This document shows, piece after piece, positions 9,867 to 58,386 of a stretch of 64,000 nt of DNA. The notes below the pieces were generated by a model. That model worked only from the letters and a program-made list of their open reading frames with translations, ran no database searches and was not told the origin of the DNA. A program made the translations under genes and the position numbers. The DNA lies in the sequence record LC667451.1. One strand, 5' to 3'. Numbering within the stretch: position 1 is the first letter of the stretch; the number at the start of each line of letters is the position of its first letter.

Positions 9867-9913
9867 CATAACCCCCAACCCGCCCGATGTCTTGGGTAGG
9901 TTGGGGGTTTATG
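9867..9913. terminator. Stem-loop between convergent genes (CATA-stem-TATG)
   Basis: ACCCCCAACC...GGTTGGGGGT arms flanked by CATA and TATGCCG. Confidence 0.7.
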
Positions 9914-9916
9914 CCG

Positions 9917-23077: not shown

Positions 23078-25930
23078 ATGTCCAAAGCGCTGAAGGAAGC
23101 CATCGCGCTTGCTGGCAGTGGTAAACGCTATTCGGCAATGTCCCTGGTCCGCTCGGACCCCGGCATGGCCGCCACTGTCAGTAAGTTGGTGCATGGCAAG
23201 ACGCCTCCCCGATACGACAGCACCGGGAACATGACGACGGACAATCCGTCGATCCAGGCGTTGAAGAACGTTTCGGACAATACGGTTCAGAACATCTCCG
23301 ATGCTCAGACCGTCATGCAGACGCTTCCGGAGCTCGAACTGGCCGCACAGATTCTCGTTTCTTCGGTGCTTTCACCGAAGGACATGATGACTGTGGAGCT
23401 AGTCTATAAAGCCCCGGAGAACTTGGTCACACCGGAAGTGAACACGGCAATGACCAATCGTGTTCGCGTCCATTTTGAACAGAACTATAAAATAAAGCAG
23501 GTCTTGCCTCGGCTGCTGCGTGACGTTCTGTTCGAGACGGGAAGCTATCCGGTTGCGGTGATTCCCGAGAACGCGATTGACGATGTGATCAATGGTCAGC
23601 GCAAGGTGACGATGGAGTCACTGGCCGATCACTTCGATCGCGAAGGCAAGATCAAGCCGCTTGGTTTGCTCGGTCCGGTGATCAAGAACAAGCCTCGTGA
23701 AGAACGTAAGGGCTCGTCGATTTCGTTCGAATCGATGCAAGATTATCGGTTCGATACTGCGTACGATACCCAGATGGGTCTGCAACTGGCCTTCGAAGGT
23801 CAGGGTCAGGAAACCTTCACGACGGTGACGGACAACTACTCGTTGCTCAAGATCCCGCAGGTCAACCAGAAGATTCGTGAACAACGGATCATGGACTTGA
23901 TGGGTTCACGCGGCATGCGTGCAATGGAAGCCTACGGGGCGGATAGCGCCGGAACGACCATGACGCACGAGGTGGGTGGCGGGACGATTCGCAAGGAGAA
24001 GATCAACGATCGGGAACTCTCGAACCTGATCTATCGGGATCGTAACTATCAGTACAAGCCTATCACGACGCTCAAGACGCAAGAGCAGTTGAATCGTCGT
24101 GCCGTGGGTAGTCCGTTGATCATGCACCTGCCGTCGGAAGCGGTGATTCCGGTGTTCGTACCAGGTAACATCGAGCAACACGTGGGCTTCTTCATCCTGA
24201 TCGATGAGGACGGTCACCCGATCCAGCGGATTGCAGACGTCGATTACTACCAGCAGTTGAACGCTCGGATGAACTCCGGTGGTTCGTTCCCTTCGGCGAT
24301 GTTGCAGAAGGTCAAGGCGAACATGCAGGGGTTCGACAACACCAACAACGCGCACCTGGATTACTCGGCACGCGTCTATGGTGAAATGATCGAGCAGGAT
24401 CTGTTGGCCCGTCTGCGTAATGGCGTCTATGGCAACGGCGTGGCCCTGGCCAAGCGTGAAGAAGTGTATCGCATCATGTTTGCGCGCGCCCTGGCCAAGC
24501 AGCACACGCAGCTGCTCTTCATGCCGATCGAATTCATGACGTACTTCGCGCTGCGCTATAACGGCGACGGCATGGGTAAGTCGATGCTCGACGACCTGAA
24601 GATCATCAACTCGCTGCGCTCGATGCTCTTGTTCGCCAACGTGATGGCGGCGGTCAAGAACTCGATGGGTCGCACGGAAGTCAAGATCAAGATGGACGAG
24701 CACGATCCTGACCCGCAGAAGACCTTTGAGCGCGTGGTGCACGAAATTCTGCGTAGCCGTCAACAAGCGTTCCCGGTGGGGACCAACTCGCCGATGGACA
24801 TCGTGGACTGGGTGCAGCGCGCGGGCTTTGAGTTCGTGCCGGAAGGCCATCCGGGCTTGCCGGACATGACGGTGGAGTTTGGTGAGAAGAACACCAACTA
24901 CGCGAAGGTCGACAACGAGTTGGATGACGATCTGCGCAAGCGCTCGATCATGGGCCTGGGCCTCACGCCCCAGTCTGTGGACGCCGCGTTTGAAGCCGAG
25001 TTCGCCACTTCGGTCCTGACGAACAACATCCTGCTCTCCAAGCGGGTGATGAACATTCAGGACGTGATCGAGCCGCAGCTGGCTGACCACATTCGCAAGG
25101 TGATGATGAATGACGAAGAGCTCATCCGAGATCTGCGTGCCATTCTCGAAGCCAATGCGGACAAGGTGATCGAACGCCTGAAGGCCCGCGACGAAGCCCA
25201 CAAGGACGACCCGACGTACAAGACCAACCTCGGCAGCCAGCCGAAGCAACTGGTAATCCAGCAACTGCTGTACGATTTCGTGATGGGCATGGAAGTCACA
25301 TTGCCCAAGCCGAATTCGGTCACGCTGGAGAACCAAGTTGCCGCCCTCGACACGTACACCAAGACGGTCGATGCGGCGTTGGATGCGTACATCTCGTCGA
25401 ACTGGTTCACGGCTGACGTGGGTGGCGATGCGAGCAACTACATCAGTACCATCAAGGAAGTGGCGAAGGCTCACTTTATCCGGAAGTGGCTGGGTGAGAA
25501 CGGTGTCATGCCGGAACTCGCTGAGCTCACGACGCTGGATGACGATGGCCGTCCGTTGCTCAACCTCTGGGATTCGTTCCAGGATCACATTGGTAACGTC
25601 ACGAAGGTGTTGGACCACTTCATGAACGGGATCAAGCCGATCAAGGATGCATCGAACCTGAACGAGAAGAAGCGTCAGGAGAGCGATACGTCGACTGGTG
25701 GTGCTGGGGGTGGTATGGGTATGGGTGGTGATGCCGGAGCCGCTGGCGGTGGTCTGGGCGGCGGTGGCGACGACTTTGGGATGGGAGACTTTGGGGGTGG
25801 TGGATTCGGTGACTTTGGTGACACCGGAGGGGGTGGCGAAGCCGGTGGCGCAAGCCCTGGTGACGAGTCACCGCTGAACCCCGAGGATGACGATCCCGAA
25901 AACATGGGTGCAGCTGCTTCACCGGTCTAA
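23078..25930 (+). CDS. Portal protein (phiKZ gp129 / SPN3US gp81 type)
   Basis: 950 aa; ELAAQILVSSVLSPKDM motif; synteny with the MCP-RNAP block; Gly/Asp-rich C-terminal tail. Confidence 0.65.
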   Translation: MSKALKEAIALAGSGKRYSAMSLVRSDPGMAATVSKLVHGKTPPRYDSTGNMTTDNPSIQALKNVSDNTVQNISDAQTVMQTLPELELAAQILVSSVLSPKDMMTVELVYKAPENLVTPEVNTAMTNRVRVHFEQNYKIKQVLPRLLRDVLFETGSYPVAVIPENAIDDVINGQRKVTMESLADHFDREGKIKPLGLLGPVIKNKPREERKGSSISFESMQDYRFDTAYDTQMGLQLAFEGQGQETFTTVTDNYSLLKIPQVNQKIREQRIMDLMGSRGMRAMEAYGADSAGTTMTHEVGGGTIRKEKINDRELSNLIYRDRNYQYKPITTLKTQEQLNRRAVGSPLIMHLPSEAVIPVFVPGNIEQHVGFFILIDEDGHPIQRIADVDYYQQLNARMNSGGSFPSAMLQKVKANMQGFDNTNNAHLDYSARVYGEMIEQDLLARLRNGVYGNGVALAKREEVYRIMFARALAKQHTQLLFMPIEFMTYFALRYNGDGMGKSMLDDLKIINSLRSMLLFANVMAAVKNSMGRTEVKIKMDEHDPDPQKTFERVVHEILRSRQQAFPVGTNSPMDIVDWVQRAGFEFVPEGHPGLPDMTVEFGEKNTNYAKVDNELDDDLRKRSIMGLGLTPQSVDAAFEAEFATSVLTNNILLSKRVMNIQDVIEPQLADHIRKVMMNDEELIRDLRAILEANADKVIERLKARDEAHKDDPTYKTNLGSQPKQLVIQQLLYDFVMGMEVTLPKPNSVTLENQVAALDTYTKTVDAALDAYISSNWFTADVGGDASNYISTIKEVAKAHFIRKWLGENGVMPELAELTTLDDDGRPLLNLWDSFQDHIGNVTKVLDHFMNGIKPIKDASNLNEKKRQESDTSTGGAGGGMGMGGDAGAAGGGLGGGGDDFGMGDFGGGGFGDFGDTGGGGEAGGASPGDESPLNPEDDDPENMGAAASPV

Positions 25931-25937
25931 ATAGACC

Positions 25938-25992
25938 AAAAAAAAAAGACGGTCATAAGGCGAGGACCCTAGGGTCCTCGCTCTATGCCGTC
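25938..25992. terminator. Bidirectional terminator with perfect 20-bp palindrome
   Basis: A10, then GACGG-T-CATA-AGG-CGAGGACCCT|AGGGTCCTCG-CTC-TATG-CCGTC; between convergent genes. Confidence 0.85.
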
Positions 25993-26027: not shown

Positions 26028-27896
26028 TTACTCTTCCGATTGCGGCGGCCAGAAGGGGGTGCCGTTCGCGTTGCCGTCGAACACCTTGCCCAGATTCGCT
26101 GCGGCGGTGCTTACTGCCTTGGAGATCTGCGAAGCCGAGCCACCCTCCGACGGATTCAAACGCGACTTGCCCGACGCATTCGGATCATTTGGATAGGCAG
26201 CTACATCTTCCGGCGTCGTGGCCTTGATGACTGGGTCCGTGGGATGGTCAGGGCGTTCCATGAATCCTGCGTCGTCGATCTGATAGATCGCCGAACGCAT
26301 GCCCCGTGGCGTCGGTGCGAAGACATTCAACACTTCGTCATTGGCCCCGCGCACAATCCGTGAGTCCGGATTCTGGGCTGCCTCGAAGAAGCGATCAACG
26401 AGCTTCTGCAACTCCACCATCTCCTCCTGTGTCCTCCAGCGAATGCCGCATTTCCTGTCGAAGATCAAGTCCGCCGGAAGGTCCGAATAATCCAGCGCCA
26501 TATGCTCGCCCAAGGACTTGGTCTTGATGTATGGCTGAGCACGCAAGAGCATCTGGTCGCGCGTTTCACCCGTCAACGGATGGATCTGCTGCTGGTAGAT
26601 CAGAGGTGACAGATCACCGTTGTGGTCGCCGTTGTCTTCACCGAGCATCGACGCATAGACGTTTGTAGGCATTTCGAATGCCTTATGGCCATCGGTGAGG
26701 CTACGAACAACGTAACCGCGCGCAGCATCCCTGATACGCGCGTGGGCTGCACGATCAAACAACGGTGTCGACGCAGTTTGATGTGCGGTGTCAGCTGTTC
26801 GATTCAGGTGCTGCATCGACGATACATGAGCGCCCGAAATACTGGCGTTCTTGATCTTGATCAAGACGAAGATGAGCGGATCATAGTCCTGACACGCCTT
26901 CTTCATCACGTGGTGATCTTCCGGCGTCACGCTTTCGCCGTCGATACGCGCCATCGTCACCAGCGCCCAGCACTGAGAGACGTTCTCGGGTTCGTGCTTA
27001 GCCCGTATTTCGTCGTACCAATCACCGTCCTTCTCGCGATTGATCGGCAGCAGATGAATCCGGTGTTCCTTCCAGAGCTCCTCGTAACCGCGGTTGAGCA
27101 TCAGGTGTTGGAACAACAGACTCGGGTCCAGCGAGCCTAACAGGCCTGCTACTGGGCTGGTTTGCTGGAACACGATTGGCGCCTGCAGGCGGCTCGGCGG
27201 TGCTACGTACTTCATCTGATCCGCCACGCGCTGCTTGCGGGCCGCGCGACCTTCGACAACGCCTTCATTGACCGACTCGTAACCCATGGCGAATCGAGCA
27301 GTCTCGACCTGCTCGACCGTCGGTTTGGTGAACAGGAAACTGCGACCCAGGCGCTCCTTCACGAGTTCGTTCAGACGCACGAGCACGGTGTACTCTTCCG
27401 GATAAATCGACACCATGTCGAGCAGTCGGGCTTCGACTTGTTCCGGCAGATGGCGAACCAGTTTGTACAGATCATGCGTTCCCGTGGGAATAAACTGGCT
27501 GCGTACTCGGTTGCGCATCTCGAAACCGATTTGCGAGGACGGCAACGAGAAACTTACGGCGTCTGACCGTGTGTCGTGATCGAGCTCAGGTAGAGCATCC
27601 CAGACCGGCATGTCATTCGGACGCAGCGCCGTATCCATGATGAACGGACGCGATACATGGCGCTCGACGAACACGATCTTCTCGAAGCAACTCGGGGCTT
27701 CCTCGTTCAGCTTCTTCAGGCGGTCGATTGCGTCCTGCCCGTGCAGATAAAGAGCGCTGGGTTGATCTGTGAGCGTGATCACACCTTCGATCCCATTCAT
27801 CTTGAGGAATTCCGCAAAGGCATTCATCAAGGTGGTCTTGCCCATGTTACCATGCCCGTCAATTGTGACGCGCAGTCCTGGATTCTTTTTGTCCAT
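26028..27896 (-). CDS. Hypothetical protein with N-terminal P-loop-like module
   Basis: ATG 27896 has an AAGGAG RBS (the track's 28178 start overlaps the upstream gene); RVTIDGHGNMGKTT is Walker-A-like. Confidence 0.7.
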   Translation of the reverse strand: MDKKNPGLRVTIDGHGNMGKTTLMNAFAEFLKMNGIEGVITLTDQPSALYLHGQDAIDRLKKLNEEAPSCFEKIVFVERHVSRPFIMDTALRPNDMPVWDALPELDHDTRSDAVSFSLPSSQIGFEMRNRVRSQFIPTGTHDLYKLVRHLPEQVEARLLDMVSIYPEEYTVLVRLNELVKERLGRSFLFTKPTVEQVETARFAMGYESVNEGVVEGRAARKQRVADQMKYVAPPSRLQAPIVFQQTSPVAGLLGSLDPSLLFQHLMLNRGYEELWKEHRIHLLPINREKDGDWYDEIRAKHEPENVSQCWALVTMARIDGESVTPEDHHVMKKACQDYDPLIFVLIKIKNASISGAHVSSMQHLNRTADTAHQTASTPLFDRAAHARIRDAARGYVVRSLTDGHKAFEMPTNVYASMLGEDNGDHNGDLSPLIYQQQIHPLTGETRDQMLLRAQPYIKTKSLGEHMALDYSDLPADLIFDRKCGIRWRTQEEMVELQKLVDRFFEAAQNPDSRIVRGANDEVLNVFAPTPRGMRSAIYQIDDAGFMERPDHPTDPVIKATTPEDVAAYPNDPNASGKSRLNPSEGGSASQISKAVSTAAANLGKVFDGNANGTPFWPPQSEE

Positions 27897-27942
27897 CACT
27901 TGCTCCTTGTAACGCGGGTGGAGTAATCCACCCGCACCTGCG

Positions 27943-28431
27943 TTAGAACTTATCGATCTTCGTGATGGCCAGCCCGTTGGTATCGAAAAACTCCTGGGCT
28001 TGTTCCACGAACTTGTCGACCAGCGGCTGGATGCGAGGCTGTGCTGCTTGCCAGGCCTTCTCACGCAACTGCTCGAAGGTGTCGCCTTCCTCGCCGATCC
28101 CTTGCAGCAGAATCGCTGGTTTGCCCGCCAGCTTGTCGATATTGCTGAAGTCCACCTCGGGCGTCTCATTGTTGACACGACTGAGGATCGTCACCGGGGT
28201 TTCCGCAATACCGGGATTGAGGTTATGCATCGCCTGCAAGATGCTTTCCTCTTGCTCCTGAACCGTCGACACAGTCCACGAACGGGCTTCCGGCTCATCG
28301 ACTAGCACGTGGGCATGCATCACGCGCTCAAAGCCGTAGTTACTGCGCAGGCCTTCCGCAATGGCCTTGCCAACGAGATTCGCTTTATGCGGATCGGTTG
28401 ACTCCACCAGAATGTTGACGGGTGCTTCCAT
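27943..28431 (-). CDS. Accessory protein, paralog family member
   Basis: GGAGG RBS; shares the GF..V and SIL.AM...NP motifs with its neighbours. Confidence 0.75.
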   Translation of the reverse strand: MEAPVNILVESTDPHKANLVGKAIAEGLRSNYGFERVMHAHVLVDEPEARSWTVSTVQEQEESILQAMHNLNPGIAETPVTILSRVNNETPEVDFSNIDKLAGKPAILLQGIGEEGDTFEQLREKAWQAAQPRIQPLVDKFVEQAQEFFDTNGLAITKIDKF

Positions 28432-28452
28432 ACTTCCTCCTCTCAGACTGCC

Positions 28453-28830
28453 TTAATCGTCCGCCACGATCGCAGCAATGTGGGCCGACTCTTCCGGTGG
28501 CAGATCGTCTTCATCTTCCTCCGGTTCCGCCAGGCAACAGCTGACCACTTCGATGCGCTGTTGCCAAATGCTCGGTGTTGCATCGGCGATCGCTTCGAGC
28601 ATGGTCTTACCCTGCTCCCAGTCGGTCTGATCTTCGAGCTTTTCGTTGACGTTAGTGTTGTCGTTGTGCTTGACCGTGATATTGCCAAAGCCGACGTCCT
28701 GCACCGCCTGACCGATCACACGACCCAGCGCCCTGGCCACCTCGTTGTTGTCCGACTCCACGATGATGGTAGCCAACGGTTCGTTTTCACCTGCCAGATC
28801 CCGCAACAATGCTTCGCCTTCCAAACTCAT
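28453..28830 (-). CDS. Accessory protein, paralog family member
   Basis: ATG 28830 has an AAGGAG RBS; GFGNI and TMLEAI...TP motifs. Confidence 0.75.
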   Translation of the reverse strand: MSLEGEALLRDLAGENEPLATIIVESDNNEVARALGRVIGQAVQDVGFGNITVKHNDNTNVNEKLEDQTDWEQGKTMLEAIADATPSIWQQRIEVVSCCLAEPEEDEDDLPPEESAHIAAIVADD

Positions 28831-28860
28831 GTCCTTCTCCTTGTTTCTGTTGTAAAGAGG

Positions 28861-28886
28861 CATAGCCGCCCTGCCGAAGCAGGGCG
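28861..28886 (-). terminator. Hairpin + TATGCC element
   Basis: On the minus strand CGCCCTGC-TTCG-GCAGGGCG followed by GCTATGCC. Confidence 0.6.
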
Positions 28887-28905
28887 AGCAGACGGCGAGC
28901 GCCGC

Positions 28906-29253
28906 TTAGAAACGCGTGATAGCGTCGACGTCTTCCGTGGCGTCTTCGAGCAGATCGTTGATGAAATCCGCGTGAGCGCCTTCACCGTTCAGTGCGAGCA
29001 CGGTGACCGGCGCCGAGAACAGCGTCGGGTTCAGTGCTTTCATCGAGCCGAGCAGCGATTCTGCGTTTTCGGGCGTGACATCGACACGGCTGGGATCGTC
29101 GCTCTTGTCGACGATGACCGAGACGTTTTCGAAGCCCGCGTCTTTGAGGCCTTTGGCGACGGCCACCGACAGAGCCTGACGTTGCGAGAGGTTGTCAGCG
29201 GCGATGATGACGCCAGCCGATTGGTTCGGGTTGTTTTCGAGTGCTTCGCTCAT
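28906..29253 (-). CDS. Accessory protein, paralog family member
   Basis: GFENV and SLLGSMKALNP motifs; AAGGA RBS. Confidence 0.75.
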   Translation of the reverse strand: MSEALENNPNQSAGVIIAADNLSQRQALSVAVAKGLKDAGFENVSVIVDKSDDPSRVDVTPENAESLLGSMKALNPTLFSAPVTVLALNGEGAHADFINDLLEDATEDVDAITRF

Positions 29254-29282
29254 GGTTCCTTCCTACTACGTGGGTTATTGAT

Positions 29283-29756
29283 CTAAACTGCTTCCTGCTC
29301 TTCATTGCCCACGAACGTACCAGCTGCCTTCTCCTCACTGATCAGTTCGATGGTAGCAGGGCTAACTTCGCCCTGCCGCGCAATGTCGAGCACGGCGGCT
29401 TTCCAACCCGGCGAGTACTCCGGGCGGTCGTCCGCGGGTTCCACCATATCCGGTCGATCCTTCATCAGCGACACGTGGACGATCTTCTCGCCATCGATGA
29501 TGTCGCTGAACGGCATCGCCAGAATACTGACCGGCCGTGCAAATACAGCCGGATTGGCTTCCTTCATTGCGTCGAGCAACGACGGCATCACTTCCGCGTC
29601 GATGGTGTTGCTCGTTTGATCGTCACGGGTCGCAAGACCCACATCGACGTTCGTGAAACCCACTTCCGTCAGACGGTTGGAGATCAAGCTCGCAACCAGT
29701 TGCCGGGTCTCCGCGCCTTGGGCTTCGACGGTGATGTTGATGTCTTCGGGAGTCAT
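29283..29756 (-). CDS. Accessory protein, paralog family member
   Basis: GFTNV and SLLDAMKEANP motifs; GAGG RBS. Confidence 0.75.
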   Translation of the reverse strand: MTPEDINITVEAQGAETRQLVASLISNRLTEVGFTNVDVGLATRDDQTSNTIDAEVMPSLLDAMKEANPAVFARPVSILAMPFSDIIDGEKIVHVSLMKDRPDMVEPADDRPEYSPGWKAAVLDIARQGEVSPATIELISEEKAAGTFVGNEEQEAV

Positions 29757-29827
29757 CTTTCCTCGCTGGGTTCATAAGACGGAGAGCGCCGGAGCACTCT
29801 CCATCTGATGGTTCGGGGTCGTAAGTT

Positions 29828-30229
29828 TTACTTCGAGAGCGCCTGCGGCATGAGATGCGTCCAGACTGTATTGGCGGCGATCACCACTTCTTCGAGCAAG
29901 GCCTCGACAAAGAGCTCTTCCACGCGACCGTCCTTGTGTAGCCACAGATCGTAGCGCACTTCGTCGTCCGTCTTCTGGTACTCACTCATCGTCACATAGG
30001 GGACTTTCTCACCCATGCGAGTCAGATCCAGGAAACAGAACTGGGTATGCGCCATTTCATCCGGGGTTTCACACACATGCATTGTTTTCAGCTGGACGTT
30101 CGGGAACTCCGAACGAACGGCTAACAGCTTAGCCTGAAGAATTCCCATGATCGCGTAGCCGAACGGATTCGGCACGTTATCAGCCATCGGAACAGTTACG
30201 GGAAGGACAGGGTTCTTACGGGCGCTCAT
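29828..30229 (-). CDS. Hypothetical protein
   Basis: 133 aa, AAGGAG RBS, co-oriented operon context. Confidence 0.65.
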   Translation of the reverse strand: MSARKNPVLPVTVPMADNVPNPFGYAIMGILQAKLLAVRSEFPNVQLKTMHVCETPDEMAHTQFCFLDLTRMGEKVPYVTMSEYQKTDDEVRYDLWLHKDGRVEELFVEALLEEVVIAANTVWTHLMPQALSK

Positions 30230-30261
30230 GCGTCACTTACTCCTTTCAGGGTGGTCTCTGA

Positions 30262-31407
30262 CTAACCCTCGGCTTCGACTTGATGGCCCGAATGCGTCGG
30301 GATCGTGTCGGGCAAGGTGTTCGTCAAATAATACTCTTCCCCATCCAGCAGAAACTGCGCAATCGCTTCGACCCAACGGCCGGGCTGATCTGGTGCGATG
30401 TTTTCCCATGCCCCACGCACGTACCAGCGCTTGACGGTTTCGTTTTGCGCATCGCGCACGTCCGCCGTCCAGGTCGTACCGTAGACGTGAAAGCGGATGT
30501 TGCATTCGCCCGGTGGCAGTTCGAACCCTTCTTCGATCGTTACGTACCATTCCGGCTCTGATTCACGGTCCGGTTGTAGATACAGCTTGGTACTGCCGAC
30601 CTGGTTCACCGAAGGTTCCGTGACTTCAGCCGCGTAACCCACCGACGGGACGGACAGCAAGTAACTGCGCACTAGCAGGGCCACACCACGGCCGATCGGA
30701 TTCGGATCGCCCAGTTCGTACTGATACGTCTTGGCTTCGTCCGTCTGCAGCCAGTTCGCATCGACGTAGAACCCGACGGCTTCCGTTTCACCCAACCAAC
30801 GTTCCAGAATGGTCAGTTCCGGGTCTGCCGCGGGGTCGAGCGCCCTGCCCTGACTGTCCATGATCGAATCCACCCGCAGTTGGGAATCGAACACGCTGAC
30901 ACGACCATCGGCGAGATTGATACTGCCCGAAATGCCCAGTTCAAAACGCACGTACAGATCCTTGCGGACGATGTACTCCAACCCTGCCACGCCCGCGCGT
31001 TCTTCCGGTGTTGTCCAGGTGACGAGTTCCACCATCCCAACCACTAGAGGAATTGACTTCTTGATGATCGTGACGAGGTGGGGTTTGTTGGCGCTGCCGG
31101 GACGGAAGTACGATTCCTCCACGTTCAGGCCGATGTTGGTGTTGACTACCTTCCCCAGTCCCTTGAAGACCAGTGAGATGGTTTCCAGACGTGCGCGTTC
31201 CGGATCGATCGTCCACTTCGAGTCGATCACGTTTTCTTCCAACAGCAGATCGGTCTTGGCCATTTCCAGGAATGGAATGCCTTTACCAAACACCAGCGGA
31301 GCCGACAGAACCGAGCGACCCGCCGTCACCGTTTCGTTCTCCACTGCACCCGGTACTTTGGTGAAGTACTGGGCATTCTCCAAGCTGTATTGCGGTACGA
31401 TTTTCAT
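30262..31407 (-). CDS. Protein whose N-terminal ~218 aa are homologous to the major capsid protein insertion region
   Basis: KIVPQYSLENAQYF aligns with MCP KIIPVYRPEAAANF; TDLLLEENVIDSKWTIDP with TDALLETGMLDSTDAIDP; GFYVDAN with GYDLDAR. Confidence 0.8.
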   Translation of the reverse strand: MKIVPQYSLENAQYFTKVPGAVENETVTAGRSVLSAPLVFGKGIPFLEMAKTDLLLEENVIDSKWTIDPERARLETISLVFKGLGKVVNTNIGLNVEESYFRPGSANKPHLVTIIKKSIPLVVGMVELVTWTTPEERAGVAGLEYIVRKDLYVRFELGISGSINLADGRVSVFDSQLRVDSIMDSQGRALDPAADPELTILERWLGETEAVGFYVDANWLQTDEAKTYQYELGDPNPIGRGVALLVRSYLLSVPSVGYAAEVTEPSVNQVGSTKLYLQPDRESEPEWYVTIEEGFELPPGECNIRFHVYGTTWTADVRDAQNETVKRWYVRGAWENIAPDQPGRWVEAIAQFLLDGEEYYLTNTLPDTIPTHSGHQVEAEG

Positions 31408-31429
31408 GGTTCCTTGTTTCCGTTGTCAC

Positions 31430-31876
31430 TTAGAAGCGAATCACGACGTTACCACCGACGACCTCGATGGTTTTGAGCGGCTCATTCGCTGCTGTGCGTT
31501 GAGCGCGCTCCCAGGCAGCCCGTGTTTCTTCTGGGTCCGGCATGTTCTGGTAGGCCTCGACCTCGTCCGGATATTTTATCAGGCCGTTGTTGGTATCGTA
31601 AATGCGATCCACCGTCTCGACCGTGATATCCATGTCGAAGAAACCCGGATTGCTTTCTTTCATCGCATCGAGTATCGACTTGACTTCCGGCGCCGGAGTG
31701 CTACTGTAGGCATTGGCCGCGTAGTCCAGATTCCGAAAGCCCGCGCCTTCCAGCGCATTGAAAATCACGTCCTGCAAGACAGCACGATCGTCGTCTTTGC
31801 CACCGCTAATCGTGACGCACATGCGATTGTCGTGTACCGCTATGGCATCGACAAACTTATTGACCTTGAGATCCAT
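31430..31876 (-). CDS. Accessory protein, paralog family member
   Basis: GAGGAGG RBS; GFRNL and SILDAMKESNP motifs. Confidence 0.75.
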   Translation of the reverse strand: MDLKVNKFVDAIAVHDNRMCVTISGGKDDDRAVLQDVIFNALEGAGFRNLDYAANAYSSTPAPEVKSILDAMKESNPGFFDMDITVETVDRIYDTNNGLIKYPDEVEAYQNMPDPEETRAAWERAQRTAANEPLKTIEVVGGNVVIRF

Positions 31877-31900
31877 GTTGCCTCCTCAGGCATATGCGGG

Positions 31901-31935
31901 CATAAAAAAAGAAGGCCTGGGAATTACCCCAGGCC
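31901..31935 (-). terminator. Intrinsic terminator
   Basis: GGCCTGGG/CCCAGGCC stem followed on the minus strand by a T run ending in TATGCC. Confidence 0.75.
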
Positions 31936-31949
31936 CCTCGTGGGACGCT

Positions 31950-34013
31950 TTACTTCACCTTACGGATCAGAAATACATCCTGTCCAATCAACCCTTGCGT
32001 GACTTCCAGCAGATGGTCGTCAGCAGTGCGGATCAGATGACGATGGAACAACTCGCCTTCCGTCGCTTCGAAGATGCTACGCGCCAGTTCGTACAACTCC
32101 GGCAGATCGCTCGTGATCATCGAGGCAATCTTGTCCGCCGGATCGAGTTCCAGTTCGAGCTCGACTGCCGCCACATTCAGATACGTGAGCGTGAAGTTGG
32201 CGACGAGATACGTAATCTTCGGCCCCTTGTCCTTCGCGTATTCACGATCCATCAGCAGATTGTCGGTGAGCAGCACCTCTTCTTCTTCCGTGACGAACTC
32301 GGCAAACGCCGCCCGAATATTCTTCACCTGGTTGCCCAGGAAAGCATTCGAGAACGCATCGCCGTAGAACTTCTCGATCGCTCCAGCCACTTCCTCGGCG
32401 TCCTCGACGAACGACGTGATGCGGATGTCCGGAATCGACAGGTTCTGGCTCAACACGCGATTCACCACATCGGTCATGCGCTGGTTGATGGCCTTGTAGA
32501 GCGGCACCGACATCGCGCCTTCCACCGAGAGCATCATCTCGCGCAGTTCCGAGTACGACTTGGCTTCCGCGAACGACTGCAGTGCGCCGCGCTCGTCCGT
32601 CGCAGCGACGAACGGTTCGGCCACTTGCGCCCGGATGCGGAACACATCCGGCACTTGCGAGTCCTTCACCGTTGCCATGCACTTCAGCGTACCCTGCAGC
32701 CATGCCAGGGTTTCCGACGTTTCCAGCACCCATGCATCCTCGATCACCTGCACCAGCGGACGCTTCGGCGGCTCTTCCCCAGCTTCGCCATCGCCCACTT
32801 GCGTCGTCAGTTCCTTCACGCCAGCCTTCACGCGTTTAAGCGATTCGGCGGACTTGGTGGTGTCGACGTTCTTCGGAATACTACCGAAGGTGGTGGGGAG
32901 GCGATGCTTTTCACGGTCCATGGGGGATTCCGTCCTTTCTTTCACAAGCTGGATGACAGCGCCGTCGGGCTGCTGTTGCAGATACATCAGTTGCGTGCGC
33001 GGGTTGTAGGCCAGCGAATACGGCTGGGACAACGACGGCCGCCACTTCAGTTTGGTGGAATCGACATGCTCCGGCTCGTTTTGCACCGGTTTCGTTTCCA
33101 CCTGCTGCAGTGGGGTTGCTGGCACGGTCATCTTGTCGACCTTCTCCGACGGGGCGTTCTTCGGTACCCATGACGAATTCGGGTCCGGCTTGATAGCTGA
33201 CGGCGCATCACCACGAGTCGCGAAACGGTCCGTGTTGAAACGATCCGAACTGCTACCTTCGCTCGAGCCCGCGCCACCACCTGCGCTGAACAGACCCGTG
33301 TTCCCGGTATTCATCCCCGTGAACTGACGCGGTGCTTGACGATTGCCACCGCCGCCCCACGCGCCGCCTTGGTTGCCCATCCCCCAACGACCGCTTTGCT
33401 GCTGACCACCAGCATTCCAACCACCGCCCTGGTTACCACCCCAGCGATTGCCTTGCTGTGCCCAGCCGCCGCCTTGATTCCCACCGCCGAAACCGCCTTG
33501 CATCATCTGCGCATAGACGTTGGACGCCTTGAACTGCGGAATCTCGTTCTGCAATTCCTGCCATATCCGACCAAGATTCTCGACCGTTTGCTGGGCCTGA
33601 ACCGGCGTATCGCTTTGCAGTTGCGGATACTGCAGGATTTGCACCGCGACGAACATTTCCACCATCTTCGGCACGAGCGCTTGTGCTGCTTGCTCCGGAT
33701 TCTGGAACTTGCGATCTGCCAGCGCGAGACAGACCCAATCCGTGACACCCATCACGAGTCCGGCGAAGATCTCGTTCTGGAAGCCATTGCGCGACACCAG
33801 GTTGTAGACGAACATCCGCGGCGGATGACGCGGCGCATTGTCCTGGATATCCATCGCAATTGCGGCAGAGATAACAGGGATCAGATCCCCCATGAACCCT
33901 GGCGCATTGAACTGCGGCACGGTCGGAGGATTGTTGAGCGAGATGCCCTGCAATGGCTGCCTTTCCGCGTTGTACGGGTCTGCAGGCAGCTGACCACCTT
34001 GTAAATTCACCAT
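31950..34013 (-). CDS. Conserved phiKZ-like protein downstream of the nvRNAP subunit, with Gly/Gln/Trp low-complexity linker
   Basis: 687 aa, AAGGA RBS; syntenic position after the RNAP subunit; no catalytic motif recognised. Confidence 0.7.
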   Translation of the reverse strand: MVNLQGGQLPADPYNAERQPLQGISLNNPPTVPQFNAPGFMGDLIPVISAAIAMDIQDNAPRHPPRMFVYNLVSRNGFQNEIFAGLVMGVTDWVCLALADRKFQNPEQAAQALVPKMVEMFVAVQILQYPQLQSDTPVQAQQTVENLGRIWQELQNEIPQFKASNVYAQMMQGGFGGGNQGGGWAQQGNRWGGNQGGGWNAGGQQQSGRWGMGNQGGAWGGGGNRQAPRQFTGMNTGNTGLFSAGGGAGSSEGSSSDRFNTDRFATRGDAPSAIKPDPNSSWVPKNAPSEKVDKMTVPATPLQQVETKPVQNEPEHVDSTKLKWRPSLSQPYSLAYNPRTQLMYLQQQPDGAVIQLVKERTESPMDREKHRLPTTFGSIPKNVDTTKSAESLKRVKAGVKELTTQVGDGEAGEEPPKRPLVQVIEDAWVLETSETLAWLQGTLKCMATVKDSQVPDVFRIRAQVAEPFVAATDERGALQSFAEAKSYSELREMMLSVEGAMSVPLYKAINQRMTDVVNRVLSQNLSIPDIRITSFVEDAEEVAGAIEKFYGDAFSNAFLGNQVKNIRAAFAEFVTEEEEVLLTDNLLMDREYAKDKGPKITYLVANFTLTYLNVAAVELELELDPADKIASMITSDLPELYELARSIFEATEGELFHRHLIRTADDHLLEVTQGLIGQDVFLIRKVK

Positions 34014-34107: not shown

Positions 34108-35778
34108 CTACTGCTTCAACTTCTGCTGCGTGCTGTCCAGCAACTCAATGAGCCCAGGATCGCGCAACACCACGCCCTTCGCATCGGTGTGCAGATGCGG
34201 ATTCAGACGTGCGTGCCCGGAAGGATCACTCTTTGGCAAGTTCGCATAACCTCCAACCTCGCACACCGAAATGTGGATCTGCTTGGTCGGGTCGCTGATC
34301 GCCGCGTTATCCTTCCGCCCCGTTTGGCGGCTGGAGCTCGTTTGTGGCACCAACTGAGCGGTCGTCTTGAACGCCTTGTTGTCGCCGGGACACGAAATAG
34401 TCGAAACCTCACCGTGCTTCTTGGTGATCGAGTACACCAGACCGGTCCGGAGAGTCTGGTTCATCATGGTCGTGATTTCTTTCGCGTTCAGTTCCTTCTT
34501 CGAAGCGGCCTTCAGCTTGAAGTAGAACTTGTTGATCTGCTTGGTGATTTCATCCAGCACGTAATAGAGGACAGACAACTCCTTGTCGTACATGCTCGAG
34601 ACCTGATCCTGAGCCGCCAGAATCCAGTCCTGGAAGTTCTCGAGAACAATACCGAACAGCTGGTAGATGTCCTCCACCGGCATGCCGATGTCTTTGAACT
34701 TGATCTTCATCACCTCATCGATGTACTCATCCAGACTGCGAATGTGCTCAGCGATGTCGTCCTCGAGCTTACCCTCGTTGATATTGCTCGAGAACAGCAG
34801 ATGCCCCATCAGAATCATCCACAGCGCCTTTTCCCGCGGCTTGGGCTCAGCCAGCGTGCCGATGTACTTCGGCAGGACACGATTCGGGAAGTGGTCGACG
34901 ATATAGAAGAACCCACACACCAGGTTTTTGACCTGTTGCGTGTATTCACTCCGACGGATAGCCAGACGAATCGTCGTGGGCGTGTAGGATTTCAGCGTGT
35001 ACGTCCGAGCCGGCCGCGTATGGGTGTTGGTTTTGACGATCACCCACTCGCTCGGCGGATACTCCGCTTCACTGATGGTGCTCGCATCCCCTACCACCGG
35101 TACCGTGCCTGCAAACTTCTGGAACATTTCGGCGAATCCATACTTACACAGCAAGTAGTGGACGAGCGTCGTGTTCGCCTTGATCACCGGCTTGAGCTTT
35201 TGCATCTTCTGGTTCTTGTTGTACACCAAGGACCAGGCCACGTGAACGGTCTCACGGAAATCACGCCCCGTAACATCGTTCGCGAGGAAATGCTGCTGCT
35301 CGCGCTGGAAGGTCAACTTTGCTCGGATGAGCTTCACGAAGATGGAAGACTCCCCCTTCGAGATCACGCGGTCGGCCAGAATCGGCGAGATCACGAAACG
35401 CGATCCACCGAGGTAAATCACACCAGCGTCGGATACAAAAGGAAGATACATATACCGCTTGATCTCCTCGACCTTGCCGGTCTTGGGATCAGTGTGGCGG
35501 AAGATGTACTTCATCATGTAAATGTCCGACCTAGCCACGTCGAACATTCGCTTGTTGTTTTTCTTACGAGTTGCCTCGTCGAATTCTTCCTGCGGTGTGC
35601 ATCGTTCCCCCTTTACGTAAGTGAAGCCTTCGGGAAAACCCTTCGCCACAGCCCGAAACACGCTGTCCACCCACCCTTCACCATCTTGCATGTGTTTTTG
35701 GGCGAGTCCATTTGCGAGATCCGGATTGAGCTTCGGAGTATGTAAGTCATACAGCCGAGCGAGTTCACGATCTGACAT
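34108..35778 (-). CDS. Non-virion RNA polymerase beta-type subunit (phiKZ gp123-like)
   Basis: TPKLNPDLANGLA, YLPFVSDAG.I...GS.F.ISPILADRVIS and final H.S..EVG.Y..LPK..P.G...LNP motifs; two genes downstream of the MCP, as in phiKZ. Confidence 0.8.
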   Translation of the reverse strand: MSDRELARLYDLHTPKLNPDLANGLAQKHMQDGEGWVDSVFRAVAKGFPEGFTYVKGERCTPQEEFDEATRKKNNKRMFDVARSDIYMMKYIFRHTDPKTGKVEEIKRYMYLPFVSDAGVIYLGGSRFVISPILADRVISKGESSIFVKLIRAKLTFQREQQHFLANDVTGRDFRETVHVAWSLVYNKNQKMQKLKPVIKANTTLVHYLLCKYGFAEMFQKFAGTVPVVGDASTISEAEYPPSEWVIVKTNTHTRPARTYTLKSYTPTTIRLAIRRSEYTQQVKNLVCGFFYIVDHFPNRVLPKYIGTLAEPKPREKALWMILMGHLLFSSNINEGKLEDDIAEHIRSLDEYIDEVMKIKFKDIGMPVEDIYQLFGIVLENFQDWILAAQDQVSSMYDKELSVLYYVLDEITKQINKFYFKLKAASKKELNAKEITTMMNQTLRTGLVYSITKKHGEVSTISCPGDNKAFKTTAQLVPQTSSSRQTGRKDNAAISDPTKQIHISVCEVGGYANLPKSDPSGHARLNPHLHTDAKGVVLRDPGLIELLDSTQQKLKQ

Positions 35779-37084: not shown

Positions 37085-37111
37085 TGTTTGAATCTACTTT
37101 TGATACAAGGG

Positions 37112-37142
37112 CATAAACCGAGGCCTAGGCCTCGGCGCTATG
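37112..37142. terminator. CATA-palindrome-TATG element
   Basis: Perfect 18-bp palindrome CCGAGGCCT|AGGCCTCGG at 37118-37135. Confidence 0.65.
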
Positions 37143-37303
37143 ACGGCATAATCCGAAGAGCGGACGACACTGGTGAGGTGTCGTCCGTCTTACGTAGCAC
37201 TACAAGAAGTTCCGTTGCCGGTTCTCCTCAATAGATAACAGATTGAGGTAAGAATTTACACCCAGCAATTCTGACAGGGTACCCTCACCCTTTGACTTGA
37301 CGG

Positions 37304-37340
37304 CATAAAAGGCTCTTCCCAGGTCCCCCCAGGAAGAGCC
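37304..37340 (-). terminator. Terminator downstream of the MCP gene
   Basis: GGCTCTTCC/GGAAGAGCC stem followed on the minus strand by TTTTATGCCGTC. Confidence 0.7.
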
Positions 37341-37430: not shown

Positions 37431-39626
37431 TCAGACCGAGTGCATGTTGACCGGAACCTTCGCCGTCACCACGTTCTCGATGCCAGCGACATCGATCGAG
37501 CCCATGATCGGCAGGTTCACCACGTGCAGGAACGACGGCTGCACCGTGATTTCCTTGCTGTTCGCACCGTTGCGATGCAGCGGCAGGATCAGCGTGAGTT
37601 CCGGCTTCCACGCCATGTTGCCGAAGTGCATCGGGTTCGGCACGCCTTCCTTGCCTTCACCGAACTCGCCGAACGAGAAGCGGATCTTGCCACGCATGTT
37701 GATGTTCAGCGTCGAGACGATCTTGACGTTGAAGTCATTGCCCAGCGTGCGGAAGTCGCCCGTCACTTGCAGGTAACGTGCGATGACCGGATCGGTACCG
37801 ATGATCACGGTCGGCGTTGCAGCGACGCCACCAGCCAGCGCGTCAGCAGCGGCCTTGAAGCCCGAGTCGCGGTACATGCGGTAGACCATGTCGCGCAGGA
37901 TGTTCACCAGCGAGGCCTGGATGTCCGCAGCACGTTCGTGCGACTTGATCGAGTCGATCACCGCCGGAGCGTTGTAGTCCTGGTGCTCGTAGAACGGCGT
38001 CACGAGGAAGCGCGCCACGCCCAGGATTTCCGGATCGCCTTGATACAGACCGCCGTTCGACGTCACGAGTTCCTTCAGTGCGCCTTCGGCTTCGAGCAGC
38101 TTCGCAACTGCCGCGTTCGACGTACGGATGTGCGTCGCGGTGATCAGCGCAGCCAGGTCCGATGCGTCGTTCTGGTCACCCAGCGTCAGCGGACGCGGGA
38201 TCGTGATCGGCGACAGGAGCGGCACGCCGTAAACCATGTTGTAGAACGTCAGGTCGAGCAGCTGACCGCGTTCACGACGGTTCGTGTTCGTGCGACGTGC
38301 GTCGAGGTCGTAGCCGACGACAGAAGCGCCAGCCAGAGCCGTCGCGATCGTTGCGCCAGCGCCTGCGTCCGTCGGGACCAGGTTGCCGTCTTCGTCACGG
38401 ATTTCGTAGATCGACACCGCACCAGCCGACAATTGCGTGTCAGCGAGTTCGAGGTTGACCGTACCGAACACTTGCAGCGACAGCTTGACTTCGTAGTTGC
38501 CCGACACGATGCTGTCGAGAACCGTCGATGCCGTACCGTCAGCCTTCGTCGTGTTCTTGTTGATCACCAGCGCGTTGCTGATGAAGTTCAGCGACATCAG
38601 GCGGTAGTTGTTCTGCACCGAGTACGTGAAGGTACCCGATTGCATGTTCGCCACCGACTTGAACTTGATCACTTCGGCGCCGTTGCCCGAACCGACCTGG
38701 ATGTACAGCGCGCCCAGCTTGATAGCCGGGTCGATCGCGTCGGTCGAATCCAGCATGCCGGTTTCGAGCAGCGCGTCCGTTTGCGAGATGCCGAGCAGCG
38801 AGAACTGCTTGTTGATCGCCAGCGGGCCCGTCGCGACGGAGATGCCTTCGTGGTCGATCGTTTGCGTCGGCACCAGGCTCGGCGACACGAAGTTCGCAGC
38901 AGCTTCCGGACGATAGACCGGGATGATCTTCGACAGGTCGTTGCGCAGGATCGTCGGGTCGATCAGGGCCTGGATGATGTTCTTCTTGCCGAAGTTCTTG
39001 CTGACCGCGCCGTCGATGGTGCGGCGAACTTCGTCGTACACTTGCACGAGGCGGATCGAGACCGTGTAGCCGTACTGGTCCGGCGTCACGACGACGGTCG
39101 GGAAGAACGCTTCACCGAATTCGTCCTGGCGTGCAGCCTGGAGGTTGTAGGCGACCGAGTACACCGTCGCAGCCTTCGTTTCGCGCTCGTCGTAGGCTTC
39201 GAGAGCCTTCGATTGACGCTTGTCCATCGCACCGTTGCCGACTGCCGGGATGAAGGTGTAGCCTTCCATCGACATCTTGCGGCCGACCGGCGCCGACAGG
39301 AAGCCCTTCATGTCGCCCGCGACGATCGCAGCGACGAGACCAGCTTGCTTCTGCGCAGCCGTGTGCTTGCCAGCGACGAGACCGTCGTTCTGGTTCAGTT
39401 CCGACGCGTAGTTCGAGCTGATGCCTTCGAGGGCAGCCTTGAGGCCCTTGATCGAGGTGTCGAGTTCTTGCGTGGTCGTGGGATCGAGCGACTCCATCGA
39501 CACGACGGAAGTTGCCAGACGCTTTTCGACGGCGGGACCACGGTTGAAGTGGCTTTGAACCTTGGCGACGAGCGAGTTGATCGTACCGTCCTGACCACCG
39601 TTGCCGATTTGATACAGTTTGGACAT
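37431..39626 (-). CDS. Major capsid protein (phiKZ gp120-like)
   Basis: 731 aa with extreme codon bias; propeptide with SME/ALE sites, then ALEAYDE...YNLQAARQDEFGEAFFPTVVV; VIIGTDPVIARYL; flanked by DnaB and RNAP genes. Confidence 0.92.
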   Translation of the reverse strand: MSKLYQIGNGGQDGTINSLVAKVQSHFNRGPAVEKRLATSVVSMESLDPTTTQELDTSIKGLKAALEGISSNYASELNQNDGLVAGKHTAAQKQAGLVAAIVAGDMKGFLSAPVGRKMSMEGYTFIPAVGNGAMDKRQSKALEAYDERETKAATVYSVAYNLQAARQDEFGEAFFPTVVVTPDQYGYTVSIRLVQVYDEVRRTIDGAVSKNFGKKNIIQALIDPTILRNDLSKIIPVYRPEAAANFVSPSLVPTQTIDHEGISVATGPLAINKQFSLLGISQTDALLETGMLDSTDAIDPAIKLGALYIQVGSGNGAEVIKFKSVANMQSGTFTYSVQNNYRLMSLNFISNALVINKNTTKADGTASTVLDSIVSGNYEVKLSLQVFGTVNLELADTQLSAGAVSIYEIRDEDGNLVPTDAGAGATIATALAGASVVGYDLDARRTNTNRRERGQLLDLTFYNMVYGVPLLSPITIPRPLTLGDQNDASDLAALITATHIRTSNAAVAKLLEAEGALKELVTSNGGLYQGDPEILGVARFLVTPFYEHQDYNAPAVIDSIKSHERAADIQASLVNILRDMVYRMYRDSGFKAAADALAGGVAATPTVIIGTDPVIARYLQVTGDFRTLGNDFNVKIVSTLNINMRGKIRFSFGEFGEGKEGVPNPMHFGNMAWKPELTLILPLHRNGANSKEITVQPSFLHVVNLPIMGSIDVAGIENVVTAKVPVNMHSV

Positions 39627-42012: not shown

Positions 42013-42157
42013 TTACCTTTCCCCTGTAGTGCCCGCTGGCGACGCTTGGGTCTGACCAACCCAGGTGTTGCTGGCCTTTATGCCGCACTTACTAATAAAG
42101 CGCCGAAATAGTTATGAATCCAATTTTGGCCCTTACTAATAAATCGCAGAGGACCCC

Positions 42158-48394: not shown

Positions 48395-48426
48395 GAGAGG
48401 CGGGCTTCGGTCCGCCTCTTATGCCG
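48395..48426 (+). terminator. Hairpin + TATGCC element
   Basis: GAGAGGCGG..TTCG..CCGCCTCT followed by TATGCCG. Confidence 0.65.
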
Positions 48427-57315: not shown

Positions 57316-58386
57316 TCAGTAAAAGCCAGCCTTCTTGCCGTAACGGTTGACGGTTTGCTGTTCAGCCACCACCTTGGACAAGACTTCAGCCAGCGGCCAC
57401 GAATCCTTCGCATTCCAGTCCTTCTGCTCCACACCAGCGTCGTGCGCAGCTGTGGCTGCTTCGTCACGCGTCAAATTGCGGAACGGCAGGATGTCAAAGC
57501 AGCGACCTTGCCGCAACAAGGCCGGGTCAATACGGTCGATACTCGGCAGGTTCGTCGAGAAGACGATCTTCTTGCCTTCGTGTTTGACCACGCCTTCCGA
57601 GGCATTCAGAATCGGCGCCATCAGCAAGTTGCCGTCCTCGCGGCTCTTGAGATAGTTGTCGATGTCTTCGTACGCCAGAATGCGTGCGATGCTGCTGCGA
57701 TAGAAGCGACTGATCAGGTTCGGCGACTCGACCACCTTCTTGCTGTACGCCAGATAGGTGTCGTAGTTGCCCGAGACGATCAGCGAACGCAGGAACGTGC
57801 TCTTGCCCACACCCGGCGGCCCAAACAGCACCAGAATCGATTCGCCCGATTCCATATAGGCCTTGAAGTATTCTTCCAGCGGCACATCCAGCCACGGATA
57901 GAACGACTGCTTGGCAATCATCGCGCCTTCGTTAGGCATGTACTTCTGCGAGAACACGATGTCGCCACGATCCGTGAGATCGTAAGCCGTTTGCACCAGC
58001 GTACCGAGCGTGCTGAAGGCTTCATCGATGTACTCGATGATCTTGTCGACTTCCTGGTTGTTGCCATACGCTCGCGCATCGATCGTAGCGTCAGTGATGC
58101 TGAAGAGCACCATTGATTCGACGAAGGTATTGTTATTGTCCTTCAGCCCGACCCATTCGGAACCCGCCTTGAAGGTGTAGTAGCCCTGACCGTCCAAGAA
58201 TTCGATAATCTTGTTGCGGGCTTTCGTGTAGCCTTCAATCGCGCGTGTGCGCGTACGGCGAATCGACGACTTGCCTGCCTTAAGCCGCGTGATTGCGGCG
58301 ATCAGTGTAAGAGCCTGGACGGTATCGCTCGGGCGGACATTGTCCTTGACGAGGGATTCCAGATCGATGTATTCGAATTGTGCCAT
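57316..58386 (-). CDS. AAA+ ATPase (BCS1-like)
   Basis: LFGPPGVGKST, Walker B ILAYEDID, LNASEG, FSTN, IDPALLRQGRCFD. Confidence 0.88.
   Translation of the reverse strand: MAQFEYIDLESLVKDNVRPSDTVQALTLIAAITRLKAGKSSIRRTRTRAIEGYTKARNKIIEFLDGQGYYTFKAGSEWVGLKDNNNTFVESMVLFSITDATIDARAYGNNQEVDKIIEYIDEAFSTLGTLVQTAYDLTDRGDIVFSQKYMPNEGAMIAKQSFYPWLDVPLEEYFKAYMESGESILVLFGPPGVGKSTFLRSLIVSGNYDTYLAYSKKVVESPNLISRFYRSSIARILAYEDIDNYLKSREDGNLLMAPILNASEGVVKHEGKKIVFSTNLPSIDRIDPALLRQGRCFDILPFRNLTRDEAATAAHDAGVEQKDWNAKDSWPLAEVLSKVVAEQQTVNRYGKKAGFY

Follow-up and report, generated by a model that had tools for sequence, protein, structure and literature searches.

A free-standing paralogue of the capsid insertion domain, joined to a lineage-specific domain, in Burkholderia phage FLC9

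What does a jumbo phage do with a second version of one domain of its major capsid protein (MCP), encoded as a separate protein away from the capsid gene? This question is raised by FLC9_gp87 of Burkholderia phage FLC9, a phiKZ-like jumbo phage of B. glumae with a genome of 321,833 bp in which every gene is annotated as 'hypothetical'. We analysed a window of 64,000 nucleotides (LC667451.1 62001-126000), to which all coordinates below refer unless another record or contig is named. In the list of open reading frames (ORFs) and their translations, gp87 occupies 30262..31407 on the minus strand, stop codon included, starts with ATG and encodes 381 amino acids (aa); it corresponds to BDD79606.1 (LC667451.1 92262-93407, 'hypothetical protein'). 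The gene lies on the strand of the MCP gene, 6 kb downstream of it and between the capsid and portal genes. An earlier note on this DNA had described its product as a free copy of the MCP insertion (I) domain fused to something else. We consider it almost certain that gp87 is a conserved two-domain protein, in which a paralogue of the MCP I domain is combined with a lineage-specific alpha/beta domain; the role of this protein can be proposed with far less confidence.

Jumbo phages build their capsid from a single protein of the HK97 fold, in which a large I domain takes the place of the covalent cross-links that HK97 forms between capsomers. In FLC9 this protein is gp92 (37431..39626, minus strand; 731 aa), an MCP of the phiKZ type with the HK97 fold, which spans the Pfam family PF25620 (PhiKZ_MCP) end to end (E 4.9e-195) and matches the capsid proteins whose structures have been solved for Goslar, phiKZ and phiKp24 (PDB chains 11bt, 36za, 8y6v and 8bfl). 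The domain organization of such proteins has been defined for phiKZ gp120, where prohead protease cuts the propeptide after residue 163, an N-arm covers residues 164-204, and the I domain (residues 248-472) is flanked by I-domain linkers (residues 205-247 and 473-484), with the P and A domains and the C-arm making up the remainder (PMC11297242). Situated on the capsid exterior, the I domain elaborates the E-loop of HK97, and its pairing into I-I dimers at the quasi-two-fold axes joins the capsomers (PMC11297242). The Goslar capsid has an I-domain arrangement like that of phiKZ, including the packing on neighbouring subunits (10.64898/2026.04.21.720040). The known contacts of the domain are of two kinds: I domains pair with each other where capsomers meet, and they pack on the P domain and the I-domain linkers of a neighbour (PMC11297242; 10.64898/2026.04.21.720040).

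Sequence comparisons revealed that the N-terminal domain of gp87 (residues 2-218; 30754..31404, minus strand) is homologous to the I domain of gp92 (residues 232-444; 38295..38933, minus strand). In a single BLASTP comparison, residues 2-217 of gp87 aligned with MCP residues 233-443 over 218 columns with 27% identity and 9 gaps (E 3e-10), which bears out the colinearity with MCP residues ~233-444 that had been claimed before. The same part of gp87 (residues 2-218) matches positions 146-361 of the 635 positions of the PF25620 model (E 6.7e-16, 58 bits, with a gathering cut-off of 27), and the protein also matches PHROG 3231, 'major head protein' (E 3.2e-14). Further support came from a profile-profile comparison with hhalign, in which the N-terminal profile of the gp87 family was matched to a profile of 35 MCP sequences at residues 232-444 with 99.7% probability (E 4e-25). 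In sequence searches of the PDB, gp87 alone retrieved residues 271-467 of phiKZ gp120 (E 2e-5), and the profile of its family retrieved residues 262-469 (E 4e-18). The match between gp87 and the MCP I domain is far beyond chance.

Structure prediction leads to the same assignment. An AlphaFold 2 (AF2) model of gp87 built from 8 aligned rows reached a mean predicted local distance difference test score (pLDDT) of 79.5, compared with only 46.7 in an earlier run with 3 sequences. The N-terminal domain scored mostly 80-92, with residues 91-150 going down to 67-79. Searched with Foldseek against PDB entries up to April 2026, this model matched the MCPs of phiKZ (8y6v; E 1.9e-13, 226 columns, root-mean-square deviation 3.9 A) and phiKp24 (8bfl; E 2.8e-12). 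The earlier note had suggested pairwise alignment and structure prediction against the phiKZ capsid structure as checks, and both support the I-domain match.

The copied segment is sharply delimited. The whole I domain is present as a free N-terminal domain and not as an insertion at the E-loop position, and it is the only part of the family model that is matched. A complete HK97 fold is lacking: the protein begins where the I domain begins, and the N-arm, the P and A domains and the C-arm are absent. The propeptide is missing as well, with residue 2 of gp87 aligning to MCP residue 233 and no N-terminal extension. Since residues 2-218 correspond to the I domain that was delimited in phiKZ by cryo-electron microscopy, without its linkers, the ends of the segment are real domain boundaries, and the earlier description of them as clean holds. 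In comparison with the I domains of phiKZ-type MCPs (phiKZ gp120, 8Y6V; Goslar gp41; phiKp24, 8BFL), gp87 shares homology of sequence and fold over the whole domain. It differs from them in being a separate polypeptide without N-arm, linkers, P domain, A domain and C-arm, in being joined to an unrelated domain, and in its much faster evolution, with an identity of just 27% to the MCP of the same phage.

The second half of gp87 begins after an interdomain linker (residues 223-234; 30706..30741, minus strand) with pLDDT values below 50 in the AF2 model, and the two halves are predicted to fold independently. By its predicted secondary structure, the C-terminal domain (residues 235-381; 30265..30705, minus strand) consists of one helix, a five-stranded sheet and two helices between residues ~235 and 377. 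The claim that these ~150-160 aa are unrelated to the MCP proved correct, as neither BLASTP (no match) nor hhalign (probability 0.2%) revealed a relation. A weak HMMER stretch (residues 344-379 against residues 669-704 of gp120, score -1) had raised the idea of a diverged MCP remainder, which the BLASTP and profile-profile results rule out. Derivation from gp86 or from the small paralogues nearby was also rejected (hhalign below 1%). The C-terminal half belongs to no family in Pfam, PHROG, NCBIfam or PADLOC, and no significant match in the PDB or in BFVD could be attributed to its fold. Exhaustive HMMER searches of 1.84 billion representatives found the domain alone nowhere, except in a 130-aa fragment (P0006) of a family member. 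Judged from the model and these searches, the C-terminal half is a separately folded, lineage-specific alpha/beta domain.

Searches for relatives of the entire protein combined a word-indexed search of 5.8 billion proteins with the exhaustive HMMER search. They yielded a family of about seven full-length members of 376-391 aa (P0001-P0005, P0040 and P0041), and all remaining matches to gp87 were full-length MCPs aligned through their I domain. Both domains, together with the characteristic length and a position between the JADA homologue and the portal gene, were found in P0002, P0003, P0004, P0005, P0040 and P0041. Every family member with genomic context is syntenic (L002-L007, on contigs of up to 313-327 kb). 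The shared gene order runs from a DnaB-like helicase gene on the opposite strand through a 189-aa gene, the MCP gene, a 387-391-aa gene and an nvRNAP subunit gene to a 686-699-aa gene, one or two small genes, the gp87 homologue and more small genes. With an ORF intact in about seven relatives, a conserved syntenic position and a location on the MCP-gene strand, gp87 can be regarded as a real gene. We found no gp87 in other cultured phages, and a syntenic 389-aa gene of Xanthomonas phage RTH11, considered as a possible orthologue, is unrelated.

The accessory location that had been noted for gp87 was also confirmed. The gene is part of an eight-gene island, gp88-gp81 (26028..31876, minus strand), which extends from the JADA homologue to the portal gene and is present and syntenic in L002-L007. 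This stretch is a variable hot spot: FLC9 has eight genes there, RTH11 has a single unrelated one, and Ralstonia phage RP12 has essentially none. As the site is near-empty in RP12 and holds one unrelated gene in RTH11, the island that contains gp87 is clade-specific and lies inside an otherwise conserved block.

Free I domains are not confined to gp87, and a survey for similar split-off domains, which had been suggested earlier, was productive. With tblastn, the MCP I domain was found in three places in FLC9. An I-domain hidden Markov model run piecewise over the whole FLC9 genome detected only the MCP, gp87 and gp132. A weak tblastn match at 57622-57801 lies inside gp106 (57316-58386, minus strand), an AAA-type ATPase (PF00004, E 1.8e-8), and was dismissed as chance. 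The gp132 protein (LC667451.1 136688-137440, minus strand, outside the window; L010:10691-11440) has 250 aa and consists of little more than an I domain, which matches PF25620 with E 2.3e-14 and, in BLASTP, the MCP with E 1e-14. Around its gene, small genes of the same strand form a long array. Five proteins, each of 250 aa, make up the gp132 family, and no orthologue was found in cultured phages. The genes of gp87 and gp132 have different genomic settings, and no closer relationship between the two proteins than between either of them and MCPs could be detected.

A further stand-alone I domain is encoded by RTH11 (WJJ55076.1, 179 aa; OQ790161.1 142211-142750, plus strand; L019:36415-36954). 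It is 27% identical to residues 262-458 of RTH11's own MCP (E 5e-15), is weakly linked to gp132, and its gene is found just downstream of nrdA/nrdB, which encode ribonucleotide reductase. LucasX, a close relative of RTH11, has just one I-domain place. Fold searches of BFVD extended the survey to short uncharacterised I-domain-like proteins of 137-315 aa in many chimalliviruses, including Phabio A0A1Y0SWN0 (315 aa, E 5.5e-13), RP12 A0A1L7N135 (229 aa) and 201phi2-1 B3FIW9 (188 aa), as well as proteins of pEt-SU, PhiEaH1, PhiPA3 (gp326) and FBKp24. PHROG 36436, a 229-position profile of unknown function, also matches MCP residues 261-335. Like gp87, these stand-alone proteins have a free I-domain-like fold, come from phiKZ-like jumbo phages and are annotated as hypothetical or uncharacterised. 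Unlike gp87, they are mostly shorter and consist of the I domain only, the C-terminal domain being confined to the gp87 family. The anatomy of gp87 is solid but not unique, since other stand-alone I domains exist, and it is apparently undescribed: as far as our literature search showed, no paper describes stand-alone I-domain proteins.

What could such a protein do? The roles listed in the earlier note, namely decoy, assembly chaperone or inhibitor, and decoration, are candidates whose weighting is shifted by the further I-domain genes, by the rapid divergence of gp87 and by the restriction of I-like PDB chains to MCPs. Without N-arm, P domain and A domain, gp87 cannot be a lattice subunit. 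Because the only known activities of the I domain are contacts with capsid protein, we propose, as the most likely reading, that gp87 acts by binding capsid protein, and we put the probability of this reading at roughly 0.45. By analogy with the solved capsids, gp87 would dock through contacts of the I-domain type. It may be a low-copy exterior add-on of the capsid or procapsid, for instance where the I domain of a hexon is unpaired. Following the pairing rule, the portal vertex would offer such sites, as the penton is missing there and the five surrounding hexons would each present an unpaired I domain. Alternatively, gp87 may act transiently during capsid assembly. We divide the probability of capsid binding about evenly between retention on virions and action at the assembly stage only, and in either case the conserved C-terminal domain would carry a second activity. 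Variation within the MCP is compatible with this proposal: the I domain, with 82% identity between FLC9 and the metagenomic phage L004, is the most variable part of the mature protein (the P/A/C part has 95%), as would suit an exposed surface where add-ons could arise. In a hand mapping, only one of the four phiKZ I-I salt-bridge residues is kept in gp87, but this count carries no information, as the phiKZ and Goslar papers name different interface residues.

Several observations weigh against this proposal. Virion association and capsid binding are putative, and a literature search found no virion proteome or map of FLC9. The pattern of divergence is also unfavourable. When FLC9 proteins were compared with their counterparts in L004, identities were 93% for the nvRNAP subunit, 88% for the MCP (L004:1191-3395), 83% for the portal protein, 70% for gp86 and 63% for the JADA homologue, and dropped to 35% for gp87 (36% for its I-like half) and 32% for gp88. 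The latter two are the fastest-evolving genes of the region, with 30-50% identity where the MCP, nvRNAP subunit and portal protein show 83-94%. Among closer pairs, gp87 is ~50% identical in its I-like half and 72-78% identical in its C-terminal half, and a less-conserved I-like half is the opposite of what is expected of a conserved capsid anchor. The absence of the island from RP12 and RTH11 shows that gp87 is not a core virion gene, and its identity of 35-50% where the MCP has 88% marks it as variable. Furthermore, profile and Foldseek searches of the PDB, whose sequence copy includes virion entries of phiKZ and Goslar, gave only MCP chains as I-like proteins, and the other stand-alone I-domain genes are located in non-structural arrays (gp132) or beside nrdAB (the RTH11 copy). 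The divergence of the I-like half, the lack of I-like accessory chains in the PDB and the non-structural settings of the paralogues favour either a soluble mimic or an unrelated exaptation.

Under exaptation, which is possible though doubtful, the I-domain fold would have become a generic binding scaffold, and the partner of gp87 would be some other component of host or phage. The low identity to the MCP and the rapid divergence are consistent with such a change of partner, as is the better conservation of the C-terminal domain in close pairs, and the many short I-like proteins in diverse chimalliviruses suggest a versatile module. On the other hand, none of our searches indicated an alternative ligand, and a recently freed lattice-contact domain would most parsimoniously keep the partner that it had. 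The age of the copy is itself ambiguous: many MCPs, that of FLC9 among them, are at much the same distance from the I-like half (25-30% identity), so that this half may stem from an old duplication or be a fast-evolving copy, and a donor lineage cannot be named.

Much of the same evidence can be read in terms of a soluble mimic of the capsid surface, an explanation that we regard as unlikely. Here gp87 and the I-only proteins such as gp132 would display the I fold to a host immune sensor or to the capsid protein of a rival phage, and thereby titrate or mislead that partner. The rapid evolution of gp87 and gp88, the greater variability of the I-like half in close pairs, the existence of I-only paralogues in non-structural arrays and the restriction of I-like PDB chains to MCPs all agree with it. 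So does the genomic setting, a clade-specific island of tandemly duplicated small genes directly after a homologue of the early, Avs5-sensed protein JADA. However, adjacency to JADA is not evidence of function, PADLOC gave no matches, and our searches yielded no description of a sensor for I domains of the phiKZ type. Moreover, gp87 is just 27% identical to the I domain of its own MCP, which would permit mimicry of the fold but not of the sequence. A broader version, which we judge improbable, holds that chimalliviruses keep a fast-evolving repertoire of soluble I-domain copies, comprising gp87, gp132, the RTH11 copy and the fold-level relatives, as capsid-surface mimics that divert immune sensors or the assembly of rival phages; gp87 would then be the version with an extra effector or anchoring domain. 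Finally, although gp87 covers just a fragment of the MCP family model, there is hardly any chance that it is a decaying, functionless remnant of a duplicated capsid gene, given that about seven relatives, with identities as low as 35%, keep the ORF intact, at 376-391 aa and in the same position, that the domain boundaries are clean, and that the C-terminal domain is conserved and confidently folded in the model.

Partial parallels to gp87 exist among known capsid-associated proteins. T4 gp24 is a vertex paralogue of gp23 that retains the HK97 fold in full and serves as a subunit of the lattice. It resembles gp87 as the product of a duplicated capsid gene, in its case with a specialised capsid role, but gp87 retains the accessory domain only and cannot take a place in the lattice. 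Decoration and cement proteins such as lambda gpD, T4 Soc and Hoc, and Dec of phage L are exterior, non-lattice capsid binders that are often dispensable and variable. The I domain of the P22 coat protein is viewed as a built-in stabiliser, so that an I domain in cis corresponds to decoration proteins in trans. In being non-core and variable between related phages, gp87 agrees with this class. It differs in origin, as no decoration protein is known to descend from a domain of the phage's own capsid protein, and its association with virions is only a candidate property. A third group consists of satellite-encoded proteins that act on a helper phage, namely SaPI CpmB, which resembles the helper scaffold, and the external scaffolds P4 Sid and PLE TcaP. 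They engage capsid protein via assembly surfaces, as is proposed for gp87, which is in contrast phage-encoded and shows no indication of size redirection or interference.

The occurrence of the I domain as separate proteins that are conserved and yet diverge rapidly identifies it as an evolvable, portable module. Should the copies bind capsid protein, they would constitute a new class of capsid accessory or assembly factors derived from the capsid protein itself, and might account for densities that are asymmetric or lack an assignment, for instance at the portal vertex. Should they be mimics, they would represent a new principle of immune evasion or competition. There is also a practical consequence for annotation: stand-alone I-domain proteins are at present annotated as hypothetical or absorbed into the MCP Pfam family, and proteins of 180-390 aa that match PF25620 should not be named major capsid protein.

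The genes that surround gp87 belong to both the conserved block and the island. Upstream of the island, gp90 (34108-35778, minus strand; PHROG 2943) is an nvRNAP subunit homologue, and gp89 (31950-34013, minus strand; 687 aa) is the JADA homologue (PDB 9rp3, E 2.4e-14). JADA is an essential early protein that is sensed by Avs5 immunity, and its gene always follows an nvRNAP subunit gene (PMC12931631). The position of gp89 directly downstream of gp90 matches this placement in other chimalliviruses. On the other side of the island, gp80 (23078-25930, plus strand; 950 aa) encodes the portal protein, related to PHIKZ129 (phiKZ gp129, chain 9xpe_M; E 4e-118) and to the Goslar portal gp36. Within the island, FLC9_gp88 (31430..31876, minus strand; 148 aa) is located directly upstream of gp87 with a 22-nt gap. 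Together with gp85, gp84, gp83 and gp82, it forms a family of tandem paralogues of 115-162 aa (27943-29756 and 31430-31876, minus strand), which is multiplied in the relatives L002-L004 as well and has no relatives in Pfam, PHROG or the PDB by profile search. Two of its members, gp88 and gp82, rank among the region's fastest-evolving genes.

The gap between gp89 and gp88 contains an element at 31899..31937 (minus strand), just after the gp89 stop codon, which consists of a GC-rich hairpin with an 11 bp stem (31912-31937), a T run and the motif TTATGCC. The gp88 start lies 17-27 nt beyond this element, the gp87 start follows 22 nt after gp88, and the hairpin with TTATGCC before gp88 is conserved in L002, L003, L004 and L007. 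Given this strong hairpin and the short spacing of the two genes, gp88 and gp87 are probably co-transcribed and set apart from the early nvRNAP-JADA unit. The core of the phiKZ late promoter is TATG (PMC4666361), and we considered the element as a late promoter of this type for gp88. This was rejected, as the same element occurs in convergent gaps without a downstream gene. Its distribution rather suggests a terminator or other 3'-end element, specific to the phage, in which TATG occurs by chance, and for this reason we draw no conclusion on the timing of gp88-gp87 expression. TTATGCC occurs 10 times in the window, compared with 3.5 expected. Three copies stand in tandem after the MCP gene (37110-37116, 37145-37151 and 37302-37308, minus strand), the combination with a hairpin is found in the convergent gaps after gp67 (9909-9915, plus strand) and after the portal gene (25961-25990, plus strand), and further hairpins with (T)TTATGCC follow genes at 42078-42084 and 48419-48425 (plus strand).

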